A stretch of DNA of 64,000 nucleotides from Macrostomum lignano (GCA_002269645.1 NIVC01003464.1:1901-65900); one strand, 5' to 3'; positions 3,597-43,882 are shown, counted from the stretch's first letter. The notes: generated by a model from the sequence alone, not told the origin. Numbers and translations are program-made.

Positions 3597-5262
3597 ATGC
3601 TGCAGGCGCAGTCATCAGACGCCGCTGCTCAAGTAGACAACCTGCCCGAGCCTCTATCGGCCAGATTTGTCGATTCATTCGCTTATAAAACTGTGCGCGA
3701 CCGGCTGCCAGTGATCCTAGCCAAGGTGGCCGACTCAGTGTGTCGCAGAAAGTCGGAGTTTAATTCCACCAACATGGACCGAGTCAAATCCGTCATCATT
3801 GGCGGCGTCTCCCGGTTGCGCAACGAACTGCAGACAGACAAGCCGCTGCTGCCGCTGTCCGACTCCGCCTCGGACACGACCGCTTGGAATGACTACCTGG
3901 CCGAGCTGACTGAAACGCTTGGCCGAGCGCCGAGTTGGTTTAAAGAGCCCTGGCTGTATGTTGAATGCTACATGTATAGGCGGCTGCTGGAGCTGGTCAA
4001 TCTAGCCGATCTGACGGTCGGCATTGATCTGTTCGCGCCCGAGAAACGGCAAAGTTTGCTTGGCTCCGCCGCGCTGGCTGCCGCTGCCGCCGAAGCCGCT
4101 CTGGCAGCCGAGGCCGAAGCAGAGGCTGCCAACGGCGCGCCTCAGCTGCGCCGGCTGCTCCGGCTCTGCCTGTCAGCCAATCTGGCCGACCTGTCGCTGT
4201 CAGCTTTGGCCGAGGCGCACCAGCTGGCCGCGGATGACGCCAACTCCTCCGGATTGATCATCCTGCTGGACCACACCGATCAGTTTGTCGACTGTTTGCG
4301 CCAGCGCGGTCCTGCTGTCGCTGTTGTGCATGTGAGCTCCGACTGGAAATACTCTGCACACCTGGAGTGGAATTTGTCACTAATATATTTACACGGAATT
4401 CAAATAGGCATAGCATTCTGACTCACGCCATCAACCCCTGTGTGAGCGTGTGTATGAGTGCGTGCCTGTGTACAGTATTGGCGCCCTTGTGTGTAATGTG
4501 TTCAGGAGTCAGCGCCGATAACTATATCGGCGTGTATTACTTCACTGTGTTATTATTATGATCCAGAGTCCCCTCCCCCCCCAAAATTCCAGGTGTGCGC
4601 ATTGACGACATTTCTCGTTCTCTGAGTACGTGTTTGAGCAAGACTGAATGTACAATCATGTCCCGCAGATCGTGCTGGACAACGTCGGCCCGGAGCTGGT
4701 GTCGGACCTCTGCCTAGCCGAATGCCTTCTACGCGGTGGTCACGCTGGAAAAGTCCGGCTGCACACCAAAGCGGCGCCCTGGTTTGTGTCCGACGCTACT
4801 GAACTGGACTTGGCTGCCACGCTTGACTGGCTGGCCTCCGGCTCGGCCGGCCAATCATCCGTCCAGCTGGCCGAGTCGCTTCGGTCTCGCCTGTCTACCG
4901 GACAGCTATCGTCCGGTAGCGACCCGTTTTGGACAACTTGGCTAGCATTTGCCGACATGGAAACTTCGCCGCTGGGCGCAAAGCTTTATAAAAAGCTGAG
5001 CCAGGCTGACTGCGTTGTGCTCAAAGGCGATCTCAACTATCGCAAGGCCGTCAGTGATCTGGCCTGGCCGCCAACCGCACCATTGGCCAAAGCCGTCGGC
5101 CGCTTCCGTCCGGCGCCTCTGCTGTTAGTTCGCACTCTCAAATCGAACGTGGTGGCCGGTTTAGCGCCCGGACAAGCCGAGGCGGCCGACGCTCAGCATT
5201 CCGACTGGATGGTGGCCGGTAAATGCGGTGTTCTGCAGTTCCTGCCTGCGGAGAATGCTTGA
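3597..5262 (+). CDS. ARMT1: ARMT1 / DUF89 damage-control phosphatase, 2 exons (3597-4331, 4669-5262), ~442 aa
   Basis: Motifs FAYKTVRDRLPVIL, WLYVECYMYRR, VVH|IVLDNVGPEL joined across a GT..AG phase-0 intron (4332-4668), PWFVSD, KGDLNYRK, RTLKS. AATAAA at 5383. Confidence 0.92.
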
Positions 5263-5418: not shown

Positions 5419-5640
5419 TTGGCCAGATGTGCAACCGACGCATCTGAAGGCTGCGTACGGCTGTTCAGTCCAAGGACTGGGGGTTGAAACACACACCCTC
5501 AATTACCCCAGCTAATGCTGGCACCCATGCAGAGTTTTAAAGTGTTTTTCTCAATGACACAAATTGTTCCAGTGGAATCGGGAATCGAACCCCCGACCTT
5601 CAAGTCGTGAGTCCAACTCTCTAGCCACTAGGCTACACAG
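5419..5640 (-). mobile_element. tRNA-derived SINE family A, copy 1
   Basis: Minus strand reads gtagcctagtggctagag...ggttcgattc (Pol III A/B boxes), followed by a body shared with 22101-22370 (ccccagtccttggactgaacagccgtacgcagccttcagatgc). Confidence 0.8.
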
Positions 5641-6354: not shown

Positions 6355-6556
6355 GCCCATGAGGGCCAGCCCCCGAGGCACAGAGTGTACATGCCTGACG
6401 ATTAGACAGTCAGTCAGTGCCGCTGTACACCCTGTGTGTGCCTGTGTACAGTATTGGGGCACTTGTATGTGCTCAGGACTCAGCGGAATGTGCGGATTTG
6501 CCTCAGTGCTGCTTTATGGCGAGTCGATGTCGCTATTATTATTAATTATTATTAAA
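6355..6556 (+). mobile_element. Dispersed SINE-like family B (catgagggcc...gagtgtacatgcctgacgatt...tgtacaccctgtg...(TTA)n tail)
   Basis: Related blocks at ~4430-4560, ~14825-14930, 27180-27815, 34945-35570, 40555-40650 (minus) and 50860-51000. The last copy is preceded by a B-box-like ggttcgatt. An AT-rich tail ends the 6355 and 34945 copies. Confidence 0.6.
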
Positions 6557-6652
6557 TCAATGTCTAACGATTTCAGCCAAACAAAGACTCAAAAGAACCA
6601 AGAGCCGTCTATTAGATTAAATAAAACTCGATCATAAATTAAATTATTAGCG

Positions 6653-9692: not shown

Positions 9693-11561
9693 TCCCAGCT
9701 CTCTAAACTTAGTAGGCATCTTATTTCCCGTAAGGCCTGTTTTCTATTTGCTAGCAGCCTGTTGTTTCTGTAACTAATCTACGAAAAAATGTTAAATATT
9801 TCTTGCAGTAAAGAACTATGCTCCGGTGGCTGACCTGTTATTGGGAACTTAATTAATGTAATTTTGCTTGCATTTTCGCTAAATAATGTAACATTGTTTT
9901 GCGTAATTTTATGCTTTTTAGGTTCAATAAAGTAAGTGTTGGTGATTAATCACGGTTGAAATATGTCATTTGAAACCTGACACACTTGAGCGTATGAAAA
10001 GTTTTTTATGCTTATGTTCTTCTAGCTCGTATTTCTTGTTTCAACATTAGGACATAGGGCTCAGAAGCACAGATATAAAAGGTGATGATATTAACTCCTG
10101 TATCACTCTTGTCCGTGTACTACATGTAAATAACTTCATTCCGACAGTAGTCGAAATTATAGTAGAGTAGTTATTTTCATTCTGCTCTGGCGTCCGCTTG
10201 GGAATTGCTTTGAGCTCAGTCTAGTTATAGCCAGCAACGAAAGCAATATCTGGTCATCTCTTTGTGCCAACAGATCGCGCGGAATCCATCAGCTTGCTGA
10301 TTGTGTGCCTGCCAGTGCAATCTTTGCATGGAAAATGGAAATATATATTGCTCAAGCCAGTTATTCAGTCAGTTTCGGGTGAAGCCGAAGCTTCCACACG
10401 ATGCAAAAAAATAGCGTGAACTCCTCCATCCATATCGCTAGCAGTTGTCTATTAGTGAGTTCCCTTCTGTCCCAAACTGCGTTGATTACTTTTCCCAGAC
10501 TGAATCGCGTTTTTTCGTTGGTTGGAATTCCTGCGTGGTCGTGCGCCTGTTTTTTCTCTAAGATATTCGTAAGATTGCCCGGCTATTGCATTCATTTCTG
10601 CTTTGGTCTTTGCGAAAACCAAGTCAATCCCGATGATATTCCGATGGTTCTGCCCGGTTTCCAGAAAGTTTATACCGCATTCCATCGGCTTTTATTGAGA
10701 AGTGTTAATATTATGAATAAATAAGAAACCATTGTTGCTTATGCCTTGACGAAGTCTGTCGCGCGATAGTCCTCGAATGTTGGCGTGGTTGGGATAAGTG
10801 CCGCTGCGGGGCGTGAAAATCCCACGCTACTTGCCGCCGCTAATACTCTCTTGTCAAGAGTGATTCTCGTTGCGTAGATCTCAGAGCTGTCGGCTGCAGC
10901 TTCTCTCTTTAGACCTTGCATCGTTGCTATCGCGGGATTCGATTCGTCAATTCCCAGTAAGACCTCACCTTCAAGGGCTCCTTTCTCACCGGTATGGCAA
11001 TCTAATTAATAATCTGGCTGCGGAAGAGGCTGTAAGTGGTTCCGCTAGCGCCTACGGATCTGGCTAGCCGGAGCACTGCAGCAGTGCTAGCGATTCTCTT
11101 CGATGCTTTAAGCGCCGCTGCAGAGGAAAAAGTAATACCTCTACACTTGCACTTGCTCGGAGATTAGAATTCGATTAATGGCCGCGCCAATAGCAGCAGC
11201 AGAGGACGTTTTTTCGCTTCAATCCGAATTTCAAATTCCAATATATCGAAGTTAATGGTTACAAGTTTTTTAAATCAATAAACGCTCGTATCAGAGCTGA
11301 TTCGCTACTAATGGAGTGAACAATAGTGAAATATATATTTATGAATTTGTGCAGAAGAAGGGCTCGTTTCTCTTCTTCAACTAGGACATTGATGTTTAAC
11401 TTGGTTTATTTCTGTTTTCAACCTGCACGCAATGGTATATATTTATCGAACGTTCATGTAAGCTGGTTTATGCAGCTTAACTAGTACACTGATTGAAGCA
11501 ATATCAGTCTGGGATTTTTTCATTCTGGTTGTCTTTGACATGGCCGTCTTTGTCTGTTGGC

Positions 11562-12301
11562 TCACCTGCCCCATGGCATGCTTCCGTAGGCTCGCTTTCC
11601 CCATGGCATGCTTCCGTAGGCTCGCTTTCCCATGGCATGCTTCCGTAGGCTCGCTTTCCCCATGGCATGCTTCCGTAGGCTCGCTTGCCCCATGGCATGC
11701 TTCCGTAGGCTCGCTTTCCCCATGGCATGCTTCCGTAGGCTCGCTTTCCCCATGGCATGCTTCCGTAGGCTCGCTTTCCCCATGGCATGCTTCCGTAGGC
11801 TCGCTTGCCCCATGGCATGCTTCCGTAGGCTCGCTTGCCCCATGGCATGCTTCCGTAGGCTCGCTTGCCCCATGGCATGCTTCCGTAGGCTCGCTTTCCC
11901 CATGGCATGCTTCCGTAGGCTCGCTTTCCCCATGGCATGCTTCCGTAGGCTCGCTTGCCCCATGGCATGCTTCCGTAGGCTCGCTTGCCCCATGGCATGC
12001 TTCCGTAGGCTCGCTTGCCCCATGGCATGCTTCCGTAGGCTCGCTTGCCCCATGGCATGCTTCCGTAGGCTCGCTTTCCCCATGGCATGCTTCCGTAGGC
12101 TCGCTTTCCCCATGGCATGCTTCCGTAGGCTCGCTTGCCCCATGGCATGCTTCCGTAGGCTCGCTTCTCAGCATCGAATTCTTGATCTTCCCCGCCTTCA
12201 GAAGCTGAGGCAGCCCCGGAAGCGCACGTGATGGCTAGAAATAGCAGCATAATGGCTAGGTGAGCTCGGCCCCACACTGCAGCTGTCGTCCATGGCTTCA
12301 T
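11562..12301 (-). CDS. npp-5: Neuropeptide precursor: signal peptide + acidic spacer + 20 x AYGSMPW-G-KR (AYGSMPWamide; flatworm PWamide/NPP-5-like)
   Basis: Hydrophobic N-terminus (AHLAIMLLFLAITCASGA), spacer EGGEDQEFDAE-KR, 20 units of 30 nt (11568-12166) with Gly amide donor and dibasic sites, ending PWGR-TGA at 11562. One 1-nt deletion at ~11629. Unit variation GGA/GGC is synonymous in this frame. Acceptor ttttcttag one base before the ATG. Minus-strand AATAAA at ~11405-11410. The family name is from recall. Confidence 0.92.
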
Positions 12302-17858: not shown

Positions 17859-19467
17859 GTATTCTCAAGAGACAAGAAATACACTTTCCTTCTACTTCAA
17901 TACGAGAGTATACTGCATAGTTCATATATATTTATTATCCCTGCTGGATTGCAATCCTCCGAGGCTGTCATTGTCACCGCTAAAAGCAGCTTGAGGCTTT
18001 AAAAATAGTTATACGAGCTATAGTCAAAAGTCAGCCAGTCTGCTTGGGCTTAAAGTTTGAGAACGTGAAGGGACTGACCTAATCTCTATTGAGGGGATCA
18101 GCCATTATGCTAATGCCCTACTTCTTATCAATCAGGATTTACTGCCATTCAAAGAGAGAGTAGTCAAAGCCGAAATCTCTTTTCCTATTCGCGCATCGAA
18201 AAATTGGATTCCGCAGCTGTCACAGGTGACAAAATGCGTGGGTCGCAGCGATAATCTCTCGAATGGTAACTTCAGGACTAACTGCTCACTTTTAAGGTTA
18301 GCCATCTTCGACTTAGAATGCCGCTATTGACTCTAGAGTGCATCACTTTAAAGATGATTTTCTATTGTTCAATTCTCTGAAGCACCTTCACAGCGTCGAC
18401 GCAGCAGGCGTCTTGTTTGACAATAAATTGACGTCTTCATTTCAAATCCAATACGATGACCGACAGAGCTTGTATCTCGATCGAACAGTTTGCTATCAAA
18501 CGAGGCCAATTTTTAACTAGCCACGACACTGGCTTGTACTTCGTCGATTCGTACATCAGCGCCTGGGATCTAATGTTGAATTTGAATGCTACACTCTAAC
18601 CAGTCTTGCTCTGATTACCACCGGTCAACTACTAGCTTGTACATTTATATCGATTACTCCAGAAAGGATCCCAATTTCATTTGAGACTCAAACGTGCTCT
18701 AGTCTGTCTTTTGACTTTGTTGATTGATGAAATCCGACCGAGGTTTTTCGACTATCGTCTGTGCCCTGAACTCAAATCATTATAGCGACTGGGTCAATCA
18801 TTAGTGAGTTGATCATAAAGCGACCGTGGACGCTGAACAAAGGACAAAGAAGGACGCCAGCAGCAACATCTTTCAGAAAAATCATGGTCAAGCATCGATT
18901 TCCATGTAGTTAAGATCAGAATTATCAAATTGCTTGCCTCCTCCCATCTGTCTGTTGTCAACTGGGAATTCTCAACTTGGTTGGCTTAGCAAAGATTTAT
19001 ATCTCAAATGAAACAGGGCCTAAATATCTGTGCTGAAGTGCAGAAAACGACCCTTCCGGCCTCTCAGACCTTTTATCATCAGATTGTTCCTGCTTATCTG
19101 ATTAGTGACTTGAAATTGGTTCCTAATGTCGCATCATTCTTCTTGTTAATTTAATCGCTGTTTACTATCCTTCTGTCTACTATCCATTATTGATTTTGAT
19201 ATTCCAGAACTTTCAGCCTTATTTTGAAAATATATATGCTTGCACTTCCGCGCAGTTTGTATTGGAGCCAGCCAGCTGTTACCACGACTTAAATTATGCT
19301 GCGCCTGTTCACTTGGCTCATTAATTATTAATTATTTCATTTTAGCCAGCAATATACGCTCGTAGATGAAACTTTTCTACACAGCTTGATCCGGGTTTAA
19401 GCAGGAGTAAAAAAGAACGCAACAGTGCCAAATTGACCTATTTAGTGGGAATATTATTGTTGAAGTG

Positions 19468-22100: not shown

Positions 22101-22370
22101 GGGGTTGCAGCCTAGTGGTTAGCTAGAGCGTCGGATTCACGACTGAAAGGTCGGGGGTTCGATTTTTCTCGACCCACTCCGGAACAATTTGTGTCCTTGA
22201 GCAAGACACTTAACTCTGCATTGCTTCAGTTCACCCAGCTGTAAAGCTGTAGCTGGAGTAGTTAAGGCTGTGTGTGGCGACCCCCAGTCCTTGGACTGAA
22301 CAGCCGTACGCAGCCTTCAGATGCGCAGCGCAATTGCTGCGGCTGAGCTGTCGGTTGTACATCTGGCCAT
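22101..22370 (+). mobile_element. tRNA-derived SINE family A, copy 2
   Basis: gcagcctagtggttagctagagc...ggttcgatt head. Central tgtgtccttgagcaagacacttaac resembles the conserved CORE/V/Meta-type SINE central motif. Body shared with 5419-5640. Confidence 0.82.
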
Positions 22371-23048
22371 TATGTGATACCAATAATATGGCCATGGCCA
22401 TGGTACTACAAACAAAATGATTTTCACTTATTCCTGGAAAAACTGTTTAAAAGGTATATTATACAAGTCACAAGAACTGGAATGTAATTAAGTATATTAA
22501 CGCTATATACCATTTGCCTTTGCAAATCTAAGTTCCATAGCTAGCTAGAGGCCAATTAAAGTTAAAATCGTTAAACTTAATTTTTATGGGGAAATTTTAA
22601 ATTTTCTACTTTCAATGATTTCATAGTGAAACTTCTGACCTGAAGTCTTTAAAAAATTGATGCAATCAACTTTTTCTGCTTTGATTGACATTGGAGCTTG
22701 CATTGGCAAAAGCAAATAAATAATGGTACTGACATGGATAGGCAACTATTTACACTGAAGGAATACTTTATAGCAATAATAATATTAATAACAACAAACC
22801 AATCAGTATTCAACTGTGCGGTACATTTCAAAATACGAGCGTAAGTGTCAGAATTAACAGCATAATAACCAGTACAAGAATACCAAACTTTAGAATGAAT
22901 ACAGCTCCATCCATTCACATTGACATCCAGAAACTTTCATTGAAGATAGCCACGAACTGAAAATTAGTTTAAGGATTAATTTAGTGAGCAATTAGTGCAT
23001 TGTTATTTGTTGTTTTCATTCTACCTGGCTCTAGATATGAGTCTGGAC

Positions 23049-23501
23049 CACAGATACTAGAATAACTAGATGGGCCACTCAGCACATTTGCGTGTAAGCT
23101 ACTTTCAGTTCAGTAGCAAGTTAAACAGAAGCATTTTAATGTATTTTTAAAGCCAAGGCTTATTTATTGACTCTTACCCCGCTTTAAACCCTCTAAATGT
23201 GCCTTTCCACACTAAACCCCCCCCGCCCCGCCCCCAATTTAATTGCCTTTCTCGGGGGAATTCCAGCCTAAAGCTGCCATGTACATTTCAGTGGACTGGC
23301 CAATGTACATTATTGCTGAATCAATTAGCAAGTTGTTTACGGCTGCAAGCTTGGGCTTCTAAACTTATTAAAGTCATTTCAGTTGCCTTTATTTTTATAA
23401 AATAAAGCTTATATATTCTTCTTTGCTACTGAACTGAAAGTAGAAATGTTTTACTAAGTATATACGCCTGAGTGGCCCATGTAGCTATTTTAGTATCTAA
23501 G
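23049..23501 (+). mobile_element. hAT-type MITE, copy 1 (~450 bp)
   Basis: TIR cacagatactagaataactagatgggccactcag / ctgagtggcccatgtagctattttagtatct. 8-bp direct repeat GTCTGGAC at 23041-23048 and 23502-23509. Confidence 0.82.
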
Positions 23502-23919: not shown

Positions 23920-26900
23920 TCAGCGGCCCGCCTCACCGGCCAGCCTGCTGGCCTCGGTGCCGACGTGCTCCCGCTCGGCCAAGGCCAGTTCGCGGCGGCG
24001 CCGCTCCTCGGCCAGCGACAGGCCGCCCAGCTCCTGCCGGGTGAACTCCTGCAGGCTGTAGCCAGCCAGCACCCGACGGATTCGAGCTTTTCGATCGGTA
24101 GCGGCGGCCGAGTCGTCGAATTCGGCATGGCTGACGTTATTTGGGCCGCGGAGCGCCATCGAGTTCAGCTGCTCCTGCACTGACACGGACTTGACGTGGC
24201 TGTTGGAGGCGTACCGGCGCTGCGGCAAGGGTGGCGGCTGCTGCTGCATTGGCCGGGGAGGCGGAACTTCTGGCGCGTTCAGCGAAGTCACAGAGAGGGC
24301 CTGCTCTACACGGGGTCTGCGATTGACTGCAATAGATTTGATTGGTAATTATAGGGTATTTACTAGAGCGTGGAATTCATTTGTTTCATTACATACTACT
24401 AATAGTAGTTTTCAGTAGGCAAAATATTTTATTAAGTTTAGAAAAAAATTGTGCTTCTTTAAATAGCTAGAATTAAATGAGGGCTTTAAAAGAGCCCTTG
24501 TACGGGCTGAAGGGCTAAAATACTGATCAAATAAGACTGAAATTTCACATCGTAGAAAATTCAATATGAGGGCCGCCAAAGAACGCCAATAATTTTGCAT
24601 GGTCCTTATTGTATTAAAGTTTCTACGATGTGAAATTGCGGCGTTATGAAAGTTTGGTATTTTGAAAGCGACCCAATTAAATACTCAGATCCTAGATGAA
24701 GAAGGTTCACACTGAATGGTTGTGAACATGTGGCTTCTTTAAAATTCGCTCGTTCGAGCTTAACTTGTTCCAACAGCAAGGTCTAACTCCTTTTCACTGC
24801 GAAGCTCCCTAGAAACGAGCCTGGGACCTCTTCAATAAAGCGATGCAAACGCTGGCTCACCTTCTGAATGACCGCCCACGCTCGGACGCAACGACGGGTT
24901 GCTGATGCCAGACGCGCCAAAGTATCCGCTCTCGCCGTCGGCCTCGCCGTAGTCGTAGCCGCTGAGGTCGACTGCGTTCAGCGCAGGCGTCGAAACCGCC
25001 GCTCGAAGCGACGAAGCGGCAGACCGCGCTGTTGATGGGCCGGCGCCTCCGACGCCGCCTCCGGCAGCAATAAGTCGGCGAGGAAATTTAGCGGCCAAAT
25101 CGATGCACTCGCCGGTGTCCAAGTCGGTCTCCAGGTAGGTGCCGCGGTTGCCAAGGCGTCTCCGATTGGCACCGGTGACGGCGACTGCCGCAGTGCCCCG
25201 CCTGCCCAGTTCGGCCATGAAGTCGGCGAGGCCGGACTTTCTGCGCCGGTGCTCAGCGTAGGCGGCCTCCAGCGCGGCCAGCTCGGATTCCAGGCGGCGG
25301 CGAGTCCGACGGAACTCTACGTCGCCGCTGTCGCCGCCGCCGGCAATGTCGATTTCAACGGTTGCAGCAGGGTCCGAAGACTGGCACTGGCGGGCGATCT
25401 CCATCTCCTGGCGGCGCCGCTGCCGCCCGATGACTGGGTTGGACGGCTTGGCCTGGCCCGGCTGCAGCAGGTGCCGCCGGTACTCGCTAGCGAATGCCAG
25501 ATCGTCTCCCTGGTACATGGCGCCCATGGCGATGATGTTGGCTATGAAGCTGAGCAGCGGCTCGCTCAGCTCCGCCTGCTGTTCGGCCTCGCGAATCTCC
25601 TGGCGCAGCCGTTCGGCCGTGGCGGAGGCGACCGGGTGGGAGCCGATGAGGCGGAGGCAGTGCTCGCGGCGACGCTCCAGGGCGGCCTTCTCCCGCTGCA
25701 GCTGGATGAGCAGCAGCAGCAGCTCGTCGTGCGGCTTGCCGAGCAGATCGGAGGCGGCGATGCTCATCCGCTTGGCCAGGCCGCTGACCGGGTAGCGGCG
25801 ACGGATCTCCTCTAGGGGCGCCGTGGCCTGCCGATCGATGGGATACTCAGTGAGAGATACTCAGTGAGAGATACTCAGTGAGAGATACTCAGTGAGAGAT
25901 ACTCAATGAGAGATACTCAGTGAGAGATACTCAATGAGAGATACTCAGTGAGAGATACTCAGTGAGAGATACTCAGTGAGAGATACTCAGTGAGAGTTAC
26001 TCAGTGAGACATTCGCAATGAGAGATACTCAGTGAGAGATACTCAGTGAGAGATTCTCAATGAGAGATACCCAGTGAGAGATACTCAGTGAGAAATACTC
26101 AGTGAGAGATACTCAGTGAGAGATACTCAATGAGAGATACTCAGTGAGAGATACTCAATGAGAGATAATCAATGAGAGATACTCAGTGAGAGATACTCAA
26201 TGAGAGATAATCAATGAGAGATACTCAGTGAGAGATACTCAGTGAGAGATACTCAGTGAGAGATACTCAATGAGAGATACTCAGTGAGAGATACTCAATG
26301 AGAGATACTCAGTGAGAGATACTCAATGAGAGATACTCAGTGAGAGATACTCAGTGAGAGATACTCAATGAGAGATACTCAGTGAGAGATACTCAATGAG
26401 AGATAATCAATGAGAGATACTCAGTGAGAGATACTCAGTGAGAGATAAGCAGTGAGGGATACCCAAGAGATAATCAGTCAGAGATACCCAATTAGAGATA
26501 ATCAGTGAGAGATACCCAATGGGAGATACTCAGTGAGGGATACCCAATGAGAGATACTTAGTGAGAGATACCCAGTGAGAAATACTCAGTGAGAAATACC
26601 CAATGAGAGATAATCTGTGAGATATACCCAATGGGAGATACTCAGTGAGAGATACTCAGTGAGAGATACTCAGTGAGAGATACCCAGTGAGAAATATTCA
26701 GTGAGAGATACTCAATGAGAGATACCCAGTGAGAGATACTCAGTGAGGATACTCAATGAGAGATCTCAGTGAGAGATACTCAGTGAGAGATACTCAATGA
26801 GAGATCTCAGCGAGAGATACTTAATGAGAGACCTCAGTGAGAGATACTCAATGAGAGATCTCAGCGAGAGATACTCAATGAGAGATACTCAGTGAGAGAT

Positions 26901-29900
26901 ACTCAATGAGAAATACTCAAACTCAATAACCAAAAGTCTATCGTATACGCAGAAAAGAACGCTTGTTCCTGAACTCACCAGCACTTGAGTATCATCCATG
27001 GCGGGGTCCTCTCTCACAGTTTCAATCATCCGCAAGTTGCCGGCTGGGCTGCCGCCGTTTGTCCAGCGCGGCCCGCCTGCAGGAAGACAAGTCGGACGGC
27101 CCGAGATGGAGAAGAGGCAGGTCAGTTCAGTGGAGACGTACGTGTTTGCCTCTGTACTCAGAGAGAGTACTGTTCCCACCCATGAGGGCAAGGTCGCAAG
27201 ACATAGTGAGTGTGCCATACATGCCTGACAATAAGAAACTAGGGGCCGCCGTGTGCACACCCTGTGTGAGCGTGTGTACACCCTGTGTGAGCGTGTGTAC
27301 ACCCTGTGTGAGCGTGTGTACACCCTGTGTGAGCGTGTGTACACCCTGTGTGAGCGTGTGTACACCCTGTGTGAGCGTGTGTACACCCTGTGTGAGCGTG
27401 TGTACACCCTGTGTGAGCGTGTGTACACCCTGTGTGAGCGTGTGTACACCCTGTGTGAGCGTGTGTACACCCTGTGTGAGCGTGTGTACACCCTGTGTGA
27501 GCGTGTGTACACCCTGTGTGAGCGTGTGTACACCCTGTGTGAGCGTGTGTACACCCTGTGTGAGCGTGTGTACACCCTGTGTGAGCGTGTGTACACCCTG
27601 TGTGAGCGTGTGTACACCCTGTGTGAGCGTGTGTACACCCTGTGTGAGCGTGTGTACACCCTGTGTGAGCGTGTGTACACCCTGTGTGAGCGTGTGTACA
27701 CCCTGTGTGAGCGTGTGTACACCCTGTGTGAGCGTGTGTACACCCTGTGTGAGCGTGTGTACACCCTGTGTGAGCGTGTGTACACCCCGTGTGAGCGTGT
27801 GTACAGTGTATGTGTGTCGACATGACTGCTTGTCTCCTCACTGGCTGCGGGTCAGCTGGAAAAACCTCAGACGATTTCCAGTTCATCAAACCGACACTCA
27901 CCGCCAGCTCCAGCAGCAGCAGCAGCAGCAGCAGGTGCTACTCCGTTATTGACGTGAACAGATCGACTGACATACTGCCGCTGGTATTGCTGCTGCTGCT
28001 GTTGTTGCTGCTGCTTCCAGACTGCAGCAGTGTTGGGCTCACGAACCACCGCGTAGTGAGCCTCCTCTGGTTCATCAGCAACGCGACGAAGACTGCCGCT
28101 GCCCCTACTAGAAGCAGCGGCAGAGTAGACAGCGTAAGGCAGCTGATAGTCCGGCTGCTGCAGTCCGGCGCCTCGAGCTACCGGCTCTCCTGACAGGTCG
28201 AGGTTCGGCTGCGACACGGTCAGCTGGCGACGATAGTTGCGCAATTCTGAGCCACCGCCGCCGCCCAGTTGCCGATCGCGCTGAAGATCGCTGCTGGTAA
28301 CTACCGTGTCTGTTAGTGTAATGAGTGACGCTGTGGCATCAATGAGTGACGCTGTGTCATTAATGAGTGACGCTGTGGCATCAATGAGTGACGCTGTGGC
28401 ATCAATGAGTGACGCTGTGTCATTAATGAGTGACGCTGTGGCATCAATGAGTGACGCTGTGGCATCAATGAGTGACGCTGTGTCATTAATGAGTGACGCT
28501 GTGGCATCAATGAGTGACGCTGTGGCATCAATGAGTGACGCTGTGGCATCAATGAGTGACGCTGTGTCATTAATGAGTGACGCTGTGGCATCAATGAGTG
28601 ACGCTGTGGCATCAATGAGTGACGCTGTGGCATCAATGAGTGACGCTGTGGCATCAATGAGTGACGCTGTGGCATCAATGAGTGACGCTGTGGCATCAAT
28701 GAGTGACGCTGTGGCATCAATGAGTGACGCTGTGGCATCAATGAGTGACGCTGTGGCATCAATGAGTGACGCTGTGTCATTAATGAGTGACTTCTTTGTA
28801 AACAATACTAACTTGAGAGTAAGCACGGAGTTTGAAAACTCACAATTACTGCCGTACATGTCCGAGTGTCTCTGAAATTCAAATCGAAAAATGCTACTAA
28901 TTACTAAAAGCATACAGTTAACTTTCTTGCCTTAGACTAACATTATCTGTGTAGCTATCGTCTCACTCTACCACTCCCCGTTGTCATTCTCACCTGACGC
29001 TACCATTTCCGGTTGCAAGTTACACCCAGTAACACAACCATTTCCGGTTGCAATTTACACCCGATAATACAACCATTTCCGGTTGCAATTTACACCCGAT
29101 AATACAACCATTTCCGGTTGCAATTTACACCCGATAATACAACCATTTCCGGTTGCAATTCACACCCGATAACACAACCATTTCCGGTTGCAATTTACAC
29201 CCGATAATACAACCATTTCCGGTTGCAATTTACACCCGATAATACAACCATTTCCGGTTGCAATTTACACCCGATAATACAACCATTTCCGGTTGTAAGT
29301 TACACCCGATAACACAACCATTTCCGGTTGTAAGTTACACCCATGACACTACCATTTCCGGTTGCAATTTACACCCATGACACTACCATTTCCGGTTGCA
29401 ATTGACACCTATGACATTACCATTTTCATTTGCAATTTACACCTATGACATTACCATTTCCATTTGCAATTTACACCCATGACACTACCATTTCCGGTTG
29501 CAATTGACACCTATGACATTACCATTACCATTTGCAATTTACACCTATGACATTACCATTTCCGGATGCAATTTTTTTCCGGTTGCAATTTCCATTTCTG
29601 GTTGCAATTTACACCTACTCGTAATAACACAGGTTATTTCGGTTATTTCCGGTTGCAGATTACGCCATCTTTACCTGCGCATGACCAGCCCAACCGCTGC
29701 TAATCTGGTTTTGCCGCTGCTGCACCTGCGGCTGATGGGCGGAAGTCGCCACCAGCAGAGCCTGGTACCAGTCGTCAAACTCTTCGGGCGTACCGGTGCT
29801 GAGGTACACTGCCACCTGGTTAGGCTCTTCCAGCTGGGAATTAAACGAGTTGAATTTTGTTGGAATTCTTTCGATTGGCGTGTCTCTAGAAAATATTAAA

Positions 29901-34944: not shown

Positions 34945-35570
34945 GCCATGAGGGCCAACCCCCAAGGCGCAGAGAGTGTACATGCCTGACGATTGGAAAG
35001 TCAAAGCTGGCCGATGTACACCCTGTGTGAGCGTGTGTACACCCTGTGTGAGCGTGTGTACACCCTGTGTGAGCGTGTGTACACCCTGTGTGAGCGTGTG
35101 TACACCCTGTGTGAGCGTGTGTACACCCTGTGTGAGCGTGTGTACACCCTGTGTGAGCGTGTGTACACCCTGTGAGAGCGTGTGTACACCCTGTGTGAGC
35201 GTGTGTACACCCTGTGTGAGCGTGTGTACACCCTATGTGAGCGTGTGTACACCCTGTGTGAGCGTGTGTACACCCTGTGTGAGCGTGTGTACACCCTGTG
35301 TGAGCGTGTGTACACCCTGTGAGAGCGTGTGTACACCCTGTGTGAGCGTGTGTACACCCTGTGTGAGCGTGTGTACACCCTATGTGAGCGTGTGTACACC
35401 CTGTGTGAGCGTGTGTACACCCTGTGTGAGCGTTTGTATGAGTGCGTGCCAGCGGAATGGGCAGAATTGCCTCAACGCTGGTTGTGGGGTGATTTCGCCG
35501 AAGCGCTTGCGCCAGGGTGCCCCACAGCCCAGCTGCGAGTTATTAATTAATTATTAATTAATTATTAAAT
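34945..35570 (+). mobile_element. SINE-like family B copy with internal 21-bp array (35015-35430, ~20 copies) and (TTAA/TTA)n tail
   Basis: 5' block catgagggccaacccccaaggcgcagagagtgtacatgcctgacgatt matches the 6355 copy. Confidence 0.7.
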
Positions 35571-38600: not shown

Positions 38601-41600
38601 CAGTGAGAGAATGGCAACTCAGTGGAGAGAATGGCAGCCCAGTGGAGAGAATGGCAGCCCAGCTGAGAGAATGGCAACTCAGTGTAAAGAATGGCAACTC
38701 AGTGGAGTGAATGGCAGCCCAGTGGAGAGAATGGCAGCCCAGTGAGAGAATGGCAACTCAGTGGAGAGAATGGCAGCCCAGTGGAGAGAATGGCAGCCCA
38801 GCTGAGAGAATGGCAACTCAGTGGAGAGAATGGCAGCCCAGCTGAGAGAATGGCAACTCAGTGTAAAGAATGGAAACTCAGTGGAGTGAATGGCAGCCCA
38901 GTGGAGAGAATGGCAGCCCAGTGGAGAGAATGGCAGCCCAGCTGAGAGAATGGCAACTCAGTGGAGAGAATGGCAGCCCAGTGGAGAGAATGGCAGCCCA
39001 GCTGAGAGAATGGCAACTCAGTGGAGAGAATGGCAGCCCAGTGGAGAGAATGGCAGCCCAGCTGAGAGAATGGCAACTCAGTGTAAAGAATGGCAACTCA
39101 GTGGAGTGAATGGCAGCCCAGTGGAGAGAATGGCAGCCCAGCTGAGATAATGGCAACTCAGTGGAGTGAATGGCAGCCCAGTGGAGAGAATGGCAGCCCA
39201 GCTGAGATAATGGCAACTCAGTGGAGAGAATGGCAGCCCAGTGGAGAGAATGTCAGCCCAGTGGAGAGAATGGCAGCCCAGCTGAGAGAATGGCAACTCA
39301 GTGGAGAGAATGGCAGCCCAGTGGAGTGAATGGCAGCCCAGTGGAGAGAATGGCAGCCCAGCTGAGATAATGGCAACTCAGTGGAGAGAATGGCAGCCCT
39401 GAAAATAGAATGGCAGCCCTGAGAAAATAATAACAACCCAGCGAAGAGAATGGCAGCCAAAATAAGGATACTGTTAGCCCAACGTACAGCCAGACCCAGC
39501 ATTGCTCTCACCTGGAATTGGGCAAAATGCGAAGACAGAGCGCCGGCCACAACAAGCGTGAGCTCCACCGGCACAGGAAAGCGGCACCGCTTGGCCAGCC
39601 GTGGATTGATGAACAGCCTGAACAGCAGCAGCACGCCGATGCACAGCGCGGAGATCACCATGCTGGCTGCGTTGGCGCCGCCGATGCGTTTGAACACGTC
39701 GGCATAGGTGAGGGCCAGCTTGAAGAAGCCGCTGTGCCGGGGCACCTTGATGCCCAGCACGGATGGCACCTGGAAGATAAGGTTTTTTATTGAGGTGTCT
39801 GGCCTTTTGAGTGCTCTTGCACTTTTTTAGTTGTTTTTGCGTGCGCCCTAGGCGGCCATCTCCAGACCAGTTCTGGCTGGTTGGGGGGGGGGGGCGCTCG
39901 TCCCGGCTTGAGTCTTTCCCCGCGGCGGCCACTGATTGGCTGGGCTTGTGTTTTTGTGTTTTTCTTTTCTGGCCCCCAGTCAATCAGATCTGCTCGGCGG
40001 GCACGCTGATTGGCTGAGGGGTCGTTTCTTTTGTTTGGCGTCTCTCTCTCTCACGCTGTCTGCCCCTCTACTCTGTTAAGTGGTATATAGTGCTCAAGCC
40101 TGGCCCAGCCAGCTCCCCGCTCTCCGCTCCGCGCCCCACGCCTAGCTCTCTAAACTAAACCAGCGATACTCAGGCGAGCCGTGTCTATACGGTCTCTTAC
40201 TACGAAGATTCAATTAATTGCGAGCAAATAAAGCGGTCAGGTGGTAGAGATATTCGAACGAGCCTCACAGCTTCTGGCACCGGTAAGACCCCCGAGTTGA
40301 TTCGCTTCTTTAGCTTTTCCGAGGCCTTACCGTAGCAGTGGTTCCATAGCTAGAGCGTCATCACGCCTGCGACTGTGACCACTGCGGCACAGCAGCGGAT
40401 TGTGTATTCTTACCGGTTACTTTATATAGTGTGTACAACCTACAGTATCGAAACTAGAAGCACTCGAGATCACAACACCAGAGGGATCGAACTATTATCG
40501 CAGAGCGTCGTCACGCCTGCTCGCATCCATACAAGTACAGACAGAGCGTCACTACGCCAATACTGTACACAGGCACGCACACGCTCACACAGGGTGTACA
40601 GCAGCCCTTTGACTTTCTAATCGTCAGGCATGTGCACTCTCTGTGTCACGGGTACAAGTTGTAAACAAGTCGTGAAAGAGTCGCCTAAGAGTCAATTTGA
40701 GGCGTTTTATTGTCTGCGACCGTAGGGTCGTATCTGAGGCGTGCCAGAGTCGCTGCAGAATCACTGAGCTGCATCTAAAGCGCATCTGCATCATTTTAAG
40801 AATTAGAATCGCATTTCACATTTATATAGCAACTCTATTTAGTCTACTTGAGTTAGTAGATAGTTAAGCGCTAACACAGCGATACTTAGACGACTTTTTC
40901 ACTACTCTTTTACGATTCTGCAACTCATGTGATGCGTTCGTGACTCAATTAACAGCCGCCTCTTGGTCCAATTAAAGTTGTTTGAGTCGTTGAAAATCCA
41001 CAAGAGAGCCCAGAGTCGCTAGTGAGTTGTTCCTGTCCCGGTAGCTTTTACAACGGGAGGTTTCGCGGCAGAGAGAGCCCACCGAGCCACTCTGACCCAC
41101 AGATACTAAAATAACTAGATGCATGGGCCACTCGGGCATATATACTTTAAAAAAAGCTTTCTACTTACAGTTCAGTAGCAAAGGAGAATACATAAGCTAT
41201 TTTATAAAAATAAAGGCAGCTGAAATGACTTTGATAAGTTTAGAAGCCCCAAGCTTGCAGGCATAAGCAACTTGCCAATTGGTTCAGCCATAATGTACAT
41301 TGGCCAGTCCACTGAAATGTACATGGCAGCTTTAGGCTGGAATTCCGAGAAAGGCAATAAAAATTGAGGCGGGGCGGGTCGTGTGGAAAGGAGCTGGTTG
41401 GAGGGTTTAAGCTGGGGGTAAGAGCCAATAAATGAGCCTTGGCTTAAAAAAATTAATTTAAATTAAAATGCTTCTTTTTATCTTACTACTGAATTGAAAG
41501 TAGCCTACACGCTAATGTGCTGAGTGGCCTATCTAGTTATTTTAGTATCTGTGCTCTGGACCCCAAAAGCAAATGTAAAAATAACTCCAATTGCCAACCA

Positions 41601-43882
41601 ACCTGCGAGGTGAGCACGTGAAACGCTGCACCAGTGGTGAATCCGCTAACCAGAGGCGTGCTCAAATAAGTAGTGATGAAGCCGAATCGAAGCAGCCCAA
41701 GGCCCAGCTGGATGAGCCCGGCCAGCAGGCTGACGCTGAGCGCCACCTCGGTGCGGTAGGCGGCAGCGTCTGGCGCCTCGGTAATCAGCGTCCCGTTGAT
41801 GCTGTCGCCCGTCTCGTTGCCGACCAACGCGGCCAGTGTTGTCGAGGACGGCGGCGACGGAGCGGTCCCCTGGCTGGCGAGGCGAGTGACCGGGACGGCC
41901 ACCATGAGGCTGGAGATGGCGAAGGTGCCCATGCTCACCTGCGTGTGAACGCGAATGATTTTTCGTATACTTTAATAGGCCCTTTAACTCTGACGTCATT
42001 TAAGCTCGTGAGCTGGTTTTTTCCGTTAGGGAATTCTTAGGTGTCATTCGGCTTAGCAAAATAAATAGATTCTTAACGCCGCAGGTGAGAGTCTAGCGCC
42101 AGTTTAGCGCTACAGGTGAGAATCTAGCGCTAATTTAGCGCCACAGGTGAGAGTCTAGCGCCAATTTAGCGCCACAGTTGAGATTTTAGCACCGAATATG
42201 AGATTCTAGCACCAATTTAGCGCCACAGGTGAGATTTTAGCACCGAAGATGAGATTCTAGCACCAATTTAGCGCCACAGGTGAGATTCTAGAGCCAATTT
42301 AGCGCCACAGGTGAGAGTCTAGCGCCAATTTAGCGCCGCAGGTGAGAGTCTAGCGCTAATTTAGCGCTGCAGGGGAGTCTTAAACGCCAATTTAAAAGAT
42401 TTTTCAAGAAACATGACACTCCATTTCCACTAGGGGAGGGGGTAGCCGACACGGCATTATGTTTTGGCATCCGTTTGAAAAATCTTGATGAAAGAATTTA
42501 TGTTTGCGTTGCAGGCCCAATGACAGTTTCGCCAGTTTCGCCAGTGCTTTGCAGAAATAAAGCTTTGCACAGAGACGAATAAAGGTCGTAGACAGAATCT
42601 TTTACAGCATCATAAACAGGACGCAAAAAAACATAACTTACAAACAGCCATTAGCGAACTGGGGTTCATCAAGTTTAGGTCTTGTGAAGTTTAGGTGAAG
42701 TGAAATTGAGGTCTTGTGAAGTTTAGGTGAAGTGAAATTGAGGTCTTGTGAAGTTCAGGTATTTTGAAGTTGACGTCTTGTGAAGTTCAGGTATTTTGAA
42801 GTTGAGGTCTTGTGAAGTTTAGGTGAAGTGAAGTTGAGGTCTTGTGAAGTTCAGGTATTTTGAAGTTGAGGTCTTGTGAAGTTTAGGTGAAGTGAAGTTG
42901 AGGTCTTGTGAAGTTCAGGTATTTTGAAGTTGAGGTCTTTTGAAGTTTAGGTGAAGTGAAGTTGAGGTATTGTGAAGTTTAGGTGAAGTGAAGTTTAGGT
43001 GAAGTGAAGTTGACGTCTTGTGAAGTTCCGGTCTTGTGAAGTTCAGGTCTTGTGAAGCTTAGGTGAAGTGAAGTTTAGGTGAAGTGAAGTTGACGTCTTG
43101 TGAAGTTCCGGTCTTGTGAAGTTCAGGTCTTGTGAAGCTTAGGTAAAGTGAAGTTGAAGTGAAGTTAAGTTGAGGTCTTGTGACGCTTAGGTGAAGTGAA
43201 GTTAAGGTCTTGTGAAGTTGAGGTGAAATAAAGCTCAGCCATTGAGCTTCGCAACCCGCCCCTCCCAGGAACTCACCTGACGCGAAGTGCCGAACAAAAA
43301 GTACAGCAGCAGCGGATAGAATCCCAGGTAGAGGCCGCACACTGGCGGCAAGTCAGCCAGCATAGCGTAGGCCATGCCCTGCGGTATGTTCATGATGCCA
43401 ACAGTCAGGCCAGCTATGATATCCGCCACCAGGTCCTTCTTCAGCTTGTAGTGTCGCATGATTGTCACGCAGGGCAGCAGGCGGAGCAGGCAGTTCAGCA
43501 GGCATCGGCCAGTCGGCTTGTGACAGGCGGCTGCGCCGAAACGTTCGGCTACGCTGCGCGCCTCGCCCCCGAATCCGCTGGGCGCCTTCGGCCGGGTGAA
43601 ATGGTAGCGGGCGTCAAAGCCGGCCTGGGAGAAAATTGGCCGACTGACGTGCACCCGCTTGCTGGTGACGGAGTGACCGTGCGGCCTGCACCGATGGATA
43701 TGCGGCGGTGGCGGCGGCGATGTCTGCTTGGCCTGCTGCGCCTCATGGTCATCGCCGTCGACTTGGGCGACATCGTCGGCGGCGTCAGCTTTGGCGAATG
43801 CAGTCTCGTCCTCCTCGGCTATGCCAGCGTGGTTGCTATCCAGGCGTCTGAGCCTGGCGCTGGCCGAGCGTTCTTTGGGCAT
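35687..43882 (-). CDS. SLC26/SulP anion transporter (prestin-like) with STAS domain; exons 43882-43277, 41938-41603, 39769-39512, 37999-37727, 37276-36887, 36442-35687 (~872 aa from the ATG at 43882)
   Basis: Motifs [23 protein letters not shown]...YFLFGTSRQ|[33 protein letters not shown]|[11 protein letters not shown], and [15 protein letters not shown] and [15 protein letters not shown]. All junctions are GT..AG phase 0. Confidence 0.93.
37340..37535. repeat. Intronic minisatellite, 24 bp unit (gggattctgaactgtttgcttgtg), ~8 copies
   Basis: Direct periodicity. Confidence 0.9.
38049..39420. repeat. Intronic minisatellite, 20 bp unit (agaatggcagcccagctgag and variants), ~68 copies, with higher-order patterning
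   Basis: Direct periodicity. Variants cccagtggag and actcagtggag alternate in the right half. Confidence 0.97.
40178..40224 (+). ncRNA. Spliced-leader (SL)-like sequence: divergent SL RNA or relic SL
   Basis: GCCGT-gtctat-ACGGTCTCTTACTACGAAGATTCAATTAATTGC carries the flatworm SL 5' hairpin GCCGT..ACGGT. It matches the M. lignano SL as I recall it (GCCGTAAAGACGGTCTCTTACTGCGAAGACTCAATTTATTGCATG) with 3 mismatches over 33 nt from ACGG, but lacks the terminal ATG|GT. Confidence 0.65.
41098..41553 (-). mobile_element. hAT-type MITE, copy 2 (inverted relative to copy 1)
   Basis: Same TIRs and body as 23049-23501. Flanks are CTCTGACC / CTCTGGAC (near-identical direct repeat). Confidence 0.8.
42078..42385. 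repeat. Intronic minisatellite, 31 bp unit (gccacaggtgagagtctagcgccaatttagc)
   Basis: Direct periodicity. Confidence 0.9.
42672..43226. repeat. Intronic minisatellite, ~32 bp unit (gaggtcttgtgaagtttaggtgaagtgaagtt)
   Basis: Direct periodicity with 16-bp sub-structure. Confidence 0.92.

Follow-up and report, generated by a model that had tools for sequence, protein, structure and literature searches.

A stretch of DNA on the plus strand of the Macrostomum lignano contig NIVC01003464.1 closely resembles the Macrostomum spliced leader (SL), and we interpret it as a dead, decaying SL relic that most likely came from an SL-bearing RNA retroposed antisense into an intron of an SLC26 gene. We would give this interpretation a probability of roughly 60%. 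It is drawn from the analysis of 64,000 nt of the contig, referred to here as the window, together with a second copy of the locus and two genuine SL RNA genes.

Results

A 47-nt stretch matches the spliced leader from its first nucleotide to the end of the mini-exon

Positions 40178 to 40224 of the window read GCCGTGTCTATACGGTCTCTTACTACGAAGATTCAATTAATTGCGAG (47 nt, plus strand). The published 45-nt Macrostomum SL, GCCGTAAAGACGGTCTCTTACTGCGAAGACTCAATTTATTGCATG (PMC10468722, Table S3), is identical in M. lignano, M. cliftonense and M. hystrix (PMC10468722, supplement), and a 35-nt version of it has also been reported (PMC8629364). The SL on which the original prediction had relied agrees with the published one. 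Alignment with the latter confirmed the match, 30 of 33 positions being identical in the core that runs from ACGG to TTGC, with the 5' GCCGT in addition, or about 37 of the 45 SL positions overall. The local alignment scored 51, whereas the best scores obtained after shuffling the entire window 20 times were 21-28, and an nhmmer profile made from the two genuine SL RNA genes described below recovered 40178-40224 with an E value of 4.9e-07. The shuffle scores and the nhmmer E value rule out a chance resemblance. The first base of the similarity is nucleotide 1 of the SL (G1) and the last is the end of the mini-exon. A partial SL match was also seen at 18421-18438 on the minus strand, with unrelated flanks, and is probably due to chance (nhmmer E=4.3).

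The stretch departs from the SL by replacement of the loop AAAG with GTCTAT, by the substitutions G23 to A, C30 to T and U37 to A, and by the change of the terminal ATG to GAG. Every difference named in the original prediction, the loss of the ATG among them, is present in the sequence, but its list was incomplete, the C30 to T change (AAGACTC to AAGATTC) having been overlooked. As also predicted, no GT follows the exon end, across which the sequence reads TTGCGAG/CAAATA (slash, exon end), and an AATAAA is found 3 nt 3' of the SL-like part.

The locus lies in an SLC26 intron and is shared by two homeologs

An SLC26/SulP anion transporter gene occupies the minus strand of the window at about 35.7-43.9 kb. 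The closest database protein to its product is 99% identical, and the cluster of that protein includes M. lignano PAA51317.1 and PAA72707.1; a JGI member of the same cluster (P0122) is on a bacterial contig. Mapping of PAA51317.1 placed the minus-strand exons on either side of the host intron at 41600-41941 (upstream in gene sense) and 39512-39771 (downstream, 39771 being approximate), and the SL-like stretch is antisense within this intron of about 1.8 kb.

Positions 25687-53897 of the window are 100% identical to the GenBank sequence of NIVC01003464.1 (Mlig_3_7 assembly). A second copy of the locus, on NIVC01001066.1 (L002), is 98.6% identical over 39500-41000, and the insertion described below is present in both homeologs (NIVC01003464.1, or L001, and L002). 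The homeologs are separated by 24 difference events in 2.3 kb. The difference-free run around the locus, at 258 nt, is shorter than a run of 468 nt in the neighbouring intron; there is no sign of selection or excess conservation at the locus in this comparison, which is uninformative on constraint because the two copies have diverged by just about 1%. At L007, a paralogous SLC26 locus that adds 23 kb of M. lignano sequence, neither an SL-like stretch nor a copy of the insert is present.

The features of a genuine SL RNA gene are absent

A pattern scan of JGI metagenomes yielded two transcripts whose 5' ends carry the canonical leader (L004 and L005) and a 3-kb genomic contig, L006, which carries a complete Macrostomum-type SL RNA gene at positions 615-723. 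A scan of a prokaryote genome collection provided a second gene, L008 (about 1590-1697), on a contig assigned to a Flavobacteriaceae MAG, of which it is evidently a flatworm contamination. The eight genuine SL RNA genes of M. lignano are each 109 nt long (PMC8629364). Both L006 and L008 consist of the canonical exon and intron hairpins and read SL-ATG/GTAAGACACCG.TGATCCAAT..TGGATC..TATTTTTAGCAGCCCT...ATGGGCT (slash, exon end). These two Macrostomum-type SL RNA genes, a by-product of the analysis, have identical exons and conserve the two intron hairpin stems and the Sm-like site, whereas their loops vary. L006 is predicted to fold in the classic manner, its donor base-pairing with the exon (z=-3.3). 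The window relic aside, the SL exon is invariant in five Macrostomum sources, and AUG forms the 3' end of every flatworm SL (PMC10468722, supplement).

What the window locus has in common with a genuine SL RNA gene is the 45-nt mini-exon, in the form of the core and the 5' GCCGT. In the genuine gene the ATG is followed by an exon-paired GTAAGACACCG, the hairpin GATCCA/TGGATC, the Sm-like TATTTTTAGC and the hairpin AGCCC/GGGCT, and none of these intron features is in place at the window locus. The Sm-like site and both hairpins of L006 and L008 are absent from it, in keeping with the original observation that no clear Sm site is visible, and its upstream flank has nothing in common with that of either gene.

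The segment 40178-40345 folds no better than shuffled sequence (z=+0.8), and the folds of the leader alone, of a 105-nt "exon" and of a hairpin at the downstream donor-like site are likewise unremarkable. It had been proposed that the differences from the SL fall in loops or between three small stems. Those mini-stems have z values of about 0 and are thermodynamically not meaningful, the loop of the third being 2 nt. Moreover, in the predicted fold of L006, G23 pairs with C42 and U37 with G28, and two of the five substitutions (G23 to A and U37 to A) disrupt these predicted pairs. The proposal that structure was spared does not hold for the modelled fold of the genuine SL RNA, and it depends on mini-stems that were chosen ad hoc. 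A search of Rfam gave no match at the locus at the gathering threshold and only noise up to an E value of 10. A covariance model from a single SL RNA gene, with which every match had E>1, is too weak to discriminate.

A direct repeat brackets a putative non-coding insert

The 23 nt that abut SL nucleotide 1 (CTAAACCAGCGATACTCAGGCGA, 40155-40177) recur on the same strand 716 nt downstream (CTAACACAGCGATACTTAGACGA, 40871-40893), with 19 of 23 positions identical and two mismatches in a 17-nt core. We regard this pair as a putative target-site duplication. Its score was reached by only 2 of 500 shuffles, the pair was recovered independently by a separate repeat search of the window, and no further occurrence of the 17-mer core was seen in the 64 kb when up to 3 mismatches were allowed. 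The flanks of the two sites share no significant similarity past the 23-mer, which rules out a tandem duplication. A motif akin to the repeat is present in inverted form at 40657-40693, inside the insert, and 40879-40915 (75%); this slightly blurs the interpretation as a target-site duplication and is a minor caveat.

The end of the 5' repeat copy coincides with SL nucleotide 1, the point at which homology to the genuine genes starts, and this coincidence would be the signature of an RNA-mediated insertion. That the homology breaks off where transcription starts favours an RNA intermediate. The divergence of the SL core (3/33, about 9%) and that of the repeat copies (2/17 to 4/23) are mutually consistent.

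The body of the putative insertion (40225-40870, plus strand) is non-coding. It contains no ORF, and neither an A-rich tract nor a poly(A) tail is found before 40871. An exact look-up of the reading frame at 40375-40620 in the protein database gave no match, and neither did a composite pseudo-protein of reading frames from the insert together with variant-leader peptides. Leader peptides retrieved no candidates from the protein database, as did the canonical leader used as control, and this search is thus no gauge of leader usage. Other copies of the head or body of the insert were found neither in the window nor in L002 (past the orthologous site) nor in L007, which together amount to about 87 kb of distinct DNA from a 760-Mb genome. 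Part of the body (40480-40652, minus strand) is a fragment of a dispersed M. lignano repeat, elsewhere accompanied by a 21-nt tandem array; it is a common repeat that lies in reverse orientation in the insert.

Two other readings of the region were discarded. One, that it is an LTR, was suggested by eye from CCAAT, TATA and AATAAA motifs and a primer-binding site; it was dropped because the window holds no second LTR copy. No convincing tRNA-complementary site was found for it, and ARAGORN detected no tRNA. The other, that 40326-40370 is a tRNA-like A-box region, was unsupported.

Discussion

Origin of the relic

Among the three origins put forward in the original prediction, a relic SL from a retroposed trans-spliced RNA fits best, given the boundaries, the unrelated upstream flank and the direct repeat. 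According to this hypothesis, an RNA would have gained the SL by trans-splicing, and the SL-bearing RNA would then have been reverse-transcribed and inserted antisense into the SLC26 intron. The resulting insertion would comprise about 0.69 kb (40178-40870) between the two copies of a target-site duplication about 17-23 nt long, and would be older than the duplication that gave rise to the two homeologous copies in M. lignano. The empty site before the insertion would read CTAAACCAGCGATACTCAGGCGA followed directly by CTTTTTCACTAC. Because neither a poly(A) tail nor an ORF is left, the parent RNA was probably a non-coding or transposon-derived transcript, and we infer that the locus has no present function. 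Several observations are at odds with this reading. The insert does not end in a poly(A) tract, and its body could be matched to neither a parent gene nor a repeat family. The alterations in the loop and from ATG to GAG go far beyond what the core decay of about 9% predicts, which would reflect either a variant source leader or complex mutations. Finally, the donor-like sequence that lies 58 nt downstream and the short extension of the nhmmer alignment past the exon, both considered next, may hint at unspliced SL RNA sequence.

These last features are the basis for an alternative hypothesis, namely, that the relic derives from SL RNA itself, exon and intron together, and not from its trans-spliced product. 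It could then be a retropseudogene, a copy of a read-through transcript, or a chimeric retrocopy formed by template switching onto SL RNA, and the degenerate intron would either directly follow the exon or have been displaced to 40283 by a 58-nt insertion. A consensus donor-like GTAAGA is found at 40283-40288 on the plus strand (GGTAAGA at 40282-40288, with the GT at 40283-40284, in the context GGTAAGAC), and the sequence downstream of it weakly resembles the SL RNA intron. The expectation for GGTAAGA is about 7 per 128 kb, and about 0.5% of 100-nt stretches hold it. Extension anchored after the GTAAGA against the intron of L006 reached a score of 7.5, which was attained by 18 of 600 shuffles and 3 of 600 genomic segments; CTTCTTTAGC is at a position comparable to that of the Sm-like site of the genuine genes; and the nhmmer alignment runs on past the exon for 12 nt of intron (ATGGTAAGACACCGG versus GAGCAAATAAAGCGG). 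However, an alignment with the SL RNA intron that was anchored at the exon end was not significant (55-165 of 1000 nulls, with stricter gap penalties). A window-wide intron scan did not list 40283 among its best matches, and the two-gene nhmmer profile gave an E value of 22 at that site. The two hairpins of the genuine intron are missing, the insert bracketed by the repeat (about 0.69 kb) is far longer than the SL RNA of 109 nt, and the single-gene covariance model is uninformative on this question. The donor-like site is also part of an inverted repeat, CGGTAAGACCCCCGA/TCCGAGGCCTTACCG (40281-40332, plus strand), which would sequester it, the fold being not significant (z=-0.8). Judged from such matches, remnants of an SL RNA intron at the locus are possible, but derivation of the relic from SL RNA itself seems to us unlikely.

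The donor-like site has a place in another scenario as well, in which an antisense transcript, probably non-coding, now has the SL-like stretch within its first exon, with a promoter at 39932-40092 and the donor at 40283. The two CCAAT boxes, the TATATAG and the GTAAGA donor that the original prediction had noted are all present. The boxes are consensus CTGATTGGCT elements (NF-Y-type inverted CCAAT) at 39932 and 40006 (span 39932-40015, plus strand), 74 nt apart, with GATTGGC at 39934 and 40009 inside them and an oppositely oriented CAGTCAATCAG between them, and two of the three such sites in the 64 kb are at this locus. The TATA-like TATATAG is at 40086-40092 on the plus strand, upstream of the consensus donor, and both boxes and the donor are retained in the homeolog. 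On the other hand, the GenBank annotation holds no plus-strand gene across 25687-53897 of the window, and the region has no ORF. The TATA-like box and the start of the SL-like stretch are separated by 92 nt, which would place the SL inside the exon, the AATAAA follows the SL-like part within 3 nt, and the homeologs show no excess conservation. We consider such an exon, as read from its motifs, improbable. One could also envision that the locus records a second leader type of Macrostomum, no longer recognised, or a lineage of retroposons derived from SL RNA, and that it is an SL-RNA-derived module which was mobilised or else recruited to start an antisense ncRNA as its first exon, because of the loop GTCTAT and the GAG end, the weak intron remnants and the NF-Y/TATA-type promoter upstream; this, too, is improbable. 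Very unlikely, in our view, is that the stretch heads a family of SL-derived SINE-like or other non-autonomous retroelements with a hard-wired leader. The unit is short and non-coding, with the SL at its start, no poly(A) and a target-site-duplication-like repeat on either side, and units without poly(A) are expected for elements mobilised by RTE/CR1-type LINEs. A second sequence, at 24490-24527 on the minus strand, resembles the SL RNA 3' domain; however, it is not similar to the SL-like locus and was not recovered with the two-gene profile, and the roughly 87 kb of M. lignano DNA (window, homeolog and L007) holds no second head or body. The scenario to which we assign hardly any probability is that of an active, divergent SL RNA gene, whose product would be a second leader class trans-spliced onto mRNAs. 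The loop and the 3' end have changed more than simple decay would predict and could be those of a distinct leader type. Nevertheless, the divergent SL-type snRNA of the original prediction fails with regard to an adjacent donor, an Sm-like site flanked by hairpins and a stable fold, the region upstream is unrelated to that of genuine SL RNA genes, and both the otherwise invariant exon and the AUG shared by flatworm SLs speak against it.

Relation to known systems

If the retroposition of an SL-bearing RNA is the correct interpretation, then reverse transcription and genomic insertion of SL-capped RNAs take place in a flatworm that is free-living and basal, and leader relics could be used to identify and date retroposition in Macrostomum, as they are in dinoflagellates. 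In mammals, snRNA retropseudogenes and chimeric retrocopies of the U6-L1 type carry a whole small RNA, target-site duplications and unrelated 3' sequence. The window locus is like these in having a 5' module that begins with the first nucleotide of the RNA, flanking duplications and an unrelated 3' part, but differs in that only the mini-exon is clearly present.

Relic DinoSL sequences tag retrogenes in dinoflagellates (PMC6050394, PMC5585692, PMC12014239). There, as proposed here, the retroposition of trans-spliced RNAs has hard-wired the SL into the genome, where it marks an RNA-mediated origin. The dinoflagellate relics precede functional retrogenes, are usually truncated and are often stacked, whereas the relic in the window has kept a full-length leader and has no surviving coding body.

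The suggestion that such a locus may be undescribed in flatworms was only partly right. In parasitic flatworms, 597 partial-leader loci tied to LTR/LINE elements have been reported and attributed to integrated trans-spliced retrotransposon transcripts, along with SL RNA pseudogenes without AUG or donor (PMC12582326, Mol Biol Evol 2025). The window locus resembles the partial leaders as a genomic leader-only remnant without other SL RNA features, and the pseudogenes in the loss of AUG or donor. Unlike the partial leaders, it is a single locus of a free-living macrostomid, with a visible target-site-duplication-like repeat and no recognisable LTR/LINE coding sequence. In M. lignano itself, a genomic SL copy is known at the 5' end of Mlig013257.g1, where it was once mistaken for an SL RNA gene (PMC8629364), an example of how genomic leader copies can mislead both the search for SL RNA genes and the annotation of gene starts from SL reads. 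Such relics are thus already known elsewhere, and the locus is real but ordinary. In both M. lignano cases the SL is encoded in DNA outside SL RNA genes; the Mlig013257.g1 copy stands at the head of a protein-coding gene and matches the SL so well that it was reported as the SL RNA, whereas the window relic is diverged, intronic, antisense and non-coding.

Repeated and palindromic sequences in the window

The putative ~0.69-kb insertion that is bracketed by a direct repeat (40178-40870, the insert) contains three copies of the sequence AGAGCGTC-RYY-ACGCC, positioned at 40352-40367, 40502-40517 and 40543-40558, where about 0.01 would be expected by chance. Each copy is a small GCGT/ACGC palindrome.

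Tandem arrays, whose periods range over 14-53 nt, are unusually dense across the whole window. A dispersed repeat family, built of a conserved head and then an array of the 21-nt unit TGTACACCCTGTGTGAGCGTG that varies, is found at 4436-4560, 6370-6560, 27190-27900, 34961-35560 and 40480-40652. The SLC26 intron that holds the SL-like relic also carries, at 41091-41561, a MITE-like element that is about 0.45 kb long and has 23-nt terminal inverted repeats, and a second, inverted copy, 85% identical to the first, lies 18 kb away at 23041-23498. Another inverted repeat pair (5439-5625 and 22122-22325) contains a tRNA-like box B (GGTTCGATT), which suggests that the pair is a tRNA-derived SINE; ARAGORN called no tRNA genes in the window. 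A long hairpin, the outer arms of which are 13 nt and perfect (TTCACATCGTAGAAA...TTTCTACGATGTGAA), occupies 24544-24634, and an Rfam search of it returned only weak miRNA-like scores, far under threshold.

A candidate neuropeptide precursor

The minus-strand ORF at 11504-12301 begins with a signal-peptide-like start, which is followed by about 17 KR-AYGSMPWG units in tandem. Judged by this organization, the ORF looks like a neuropeptide precursor, the predicted product of which would be an amidated AYGSMPW peptide.

Other SL-like sequences and SL RNA genes outside the assembly

At 18421-18438 (minus strand), the sequence GAAGACGTCAATTTATTG matches the 3′ part of the SL at 17 of 18 positions; its flanks are unrelated, and it is probably a chance match. 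The top Smith-Waterman match in the window (z about 5.8) is GATCAGTATTTTAGCCCTTCAGCCCGTACAAGGGCT at 24490-24527 (minus strand), which is similar to the Sm-like site and the last hairpin of the SL RNA from the JGI metagenome contig L006. Because no leader lies upstream and the nhmmer profile built from the SL RNA genes of L006 and L008 did not match it, its status is uncertain.

L008 (GenBank JAGQZA010000190.1), deposited within the Flavobacteriaceae MAG HKST-UBA79, carries a complete Macrostomum-type SL RNA gene at about 1590-1697; the bacterial bin is evidently contaminated here with DNA of a flatworm. The SL RNA gene on L006 (Ga0302322_100095745), at 615-723, is genuine and belongs to a Macrostomum-like worm from the environment. 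Its exon does not differ from the published SL, and about 1.1 kb downstream of it an intronless ORF (1774-2922) resembles a Na/K-ATPase beta subunit.
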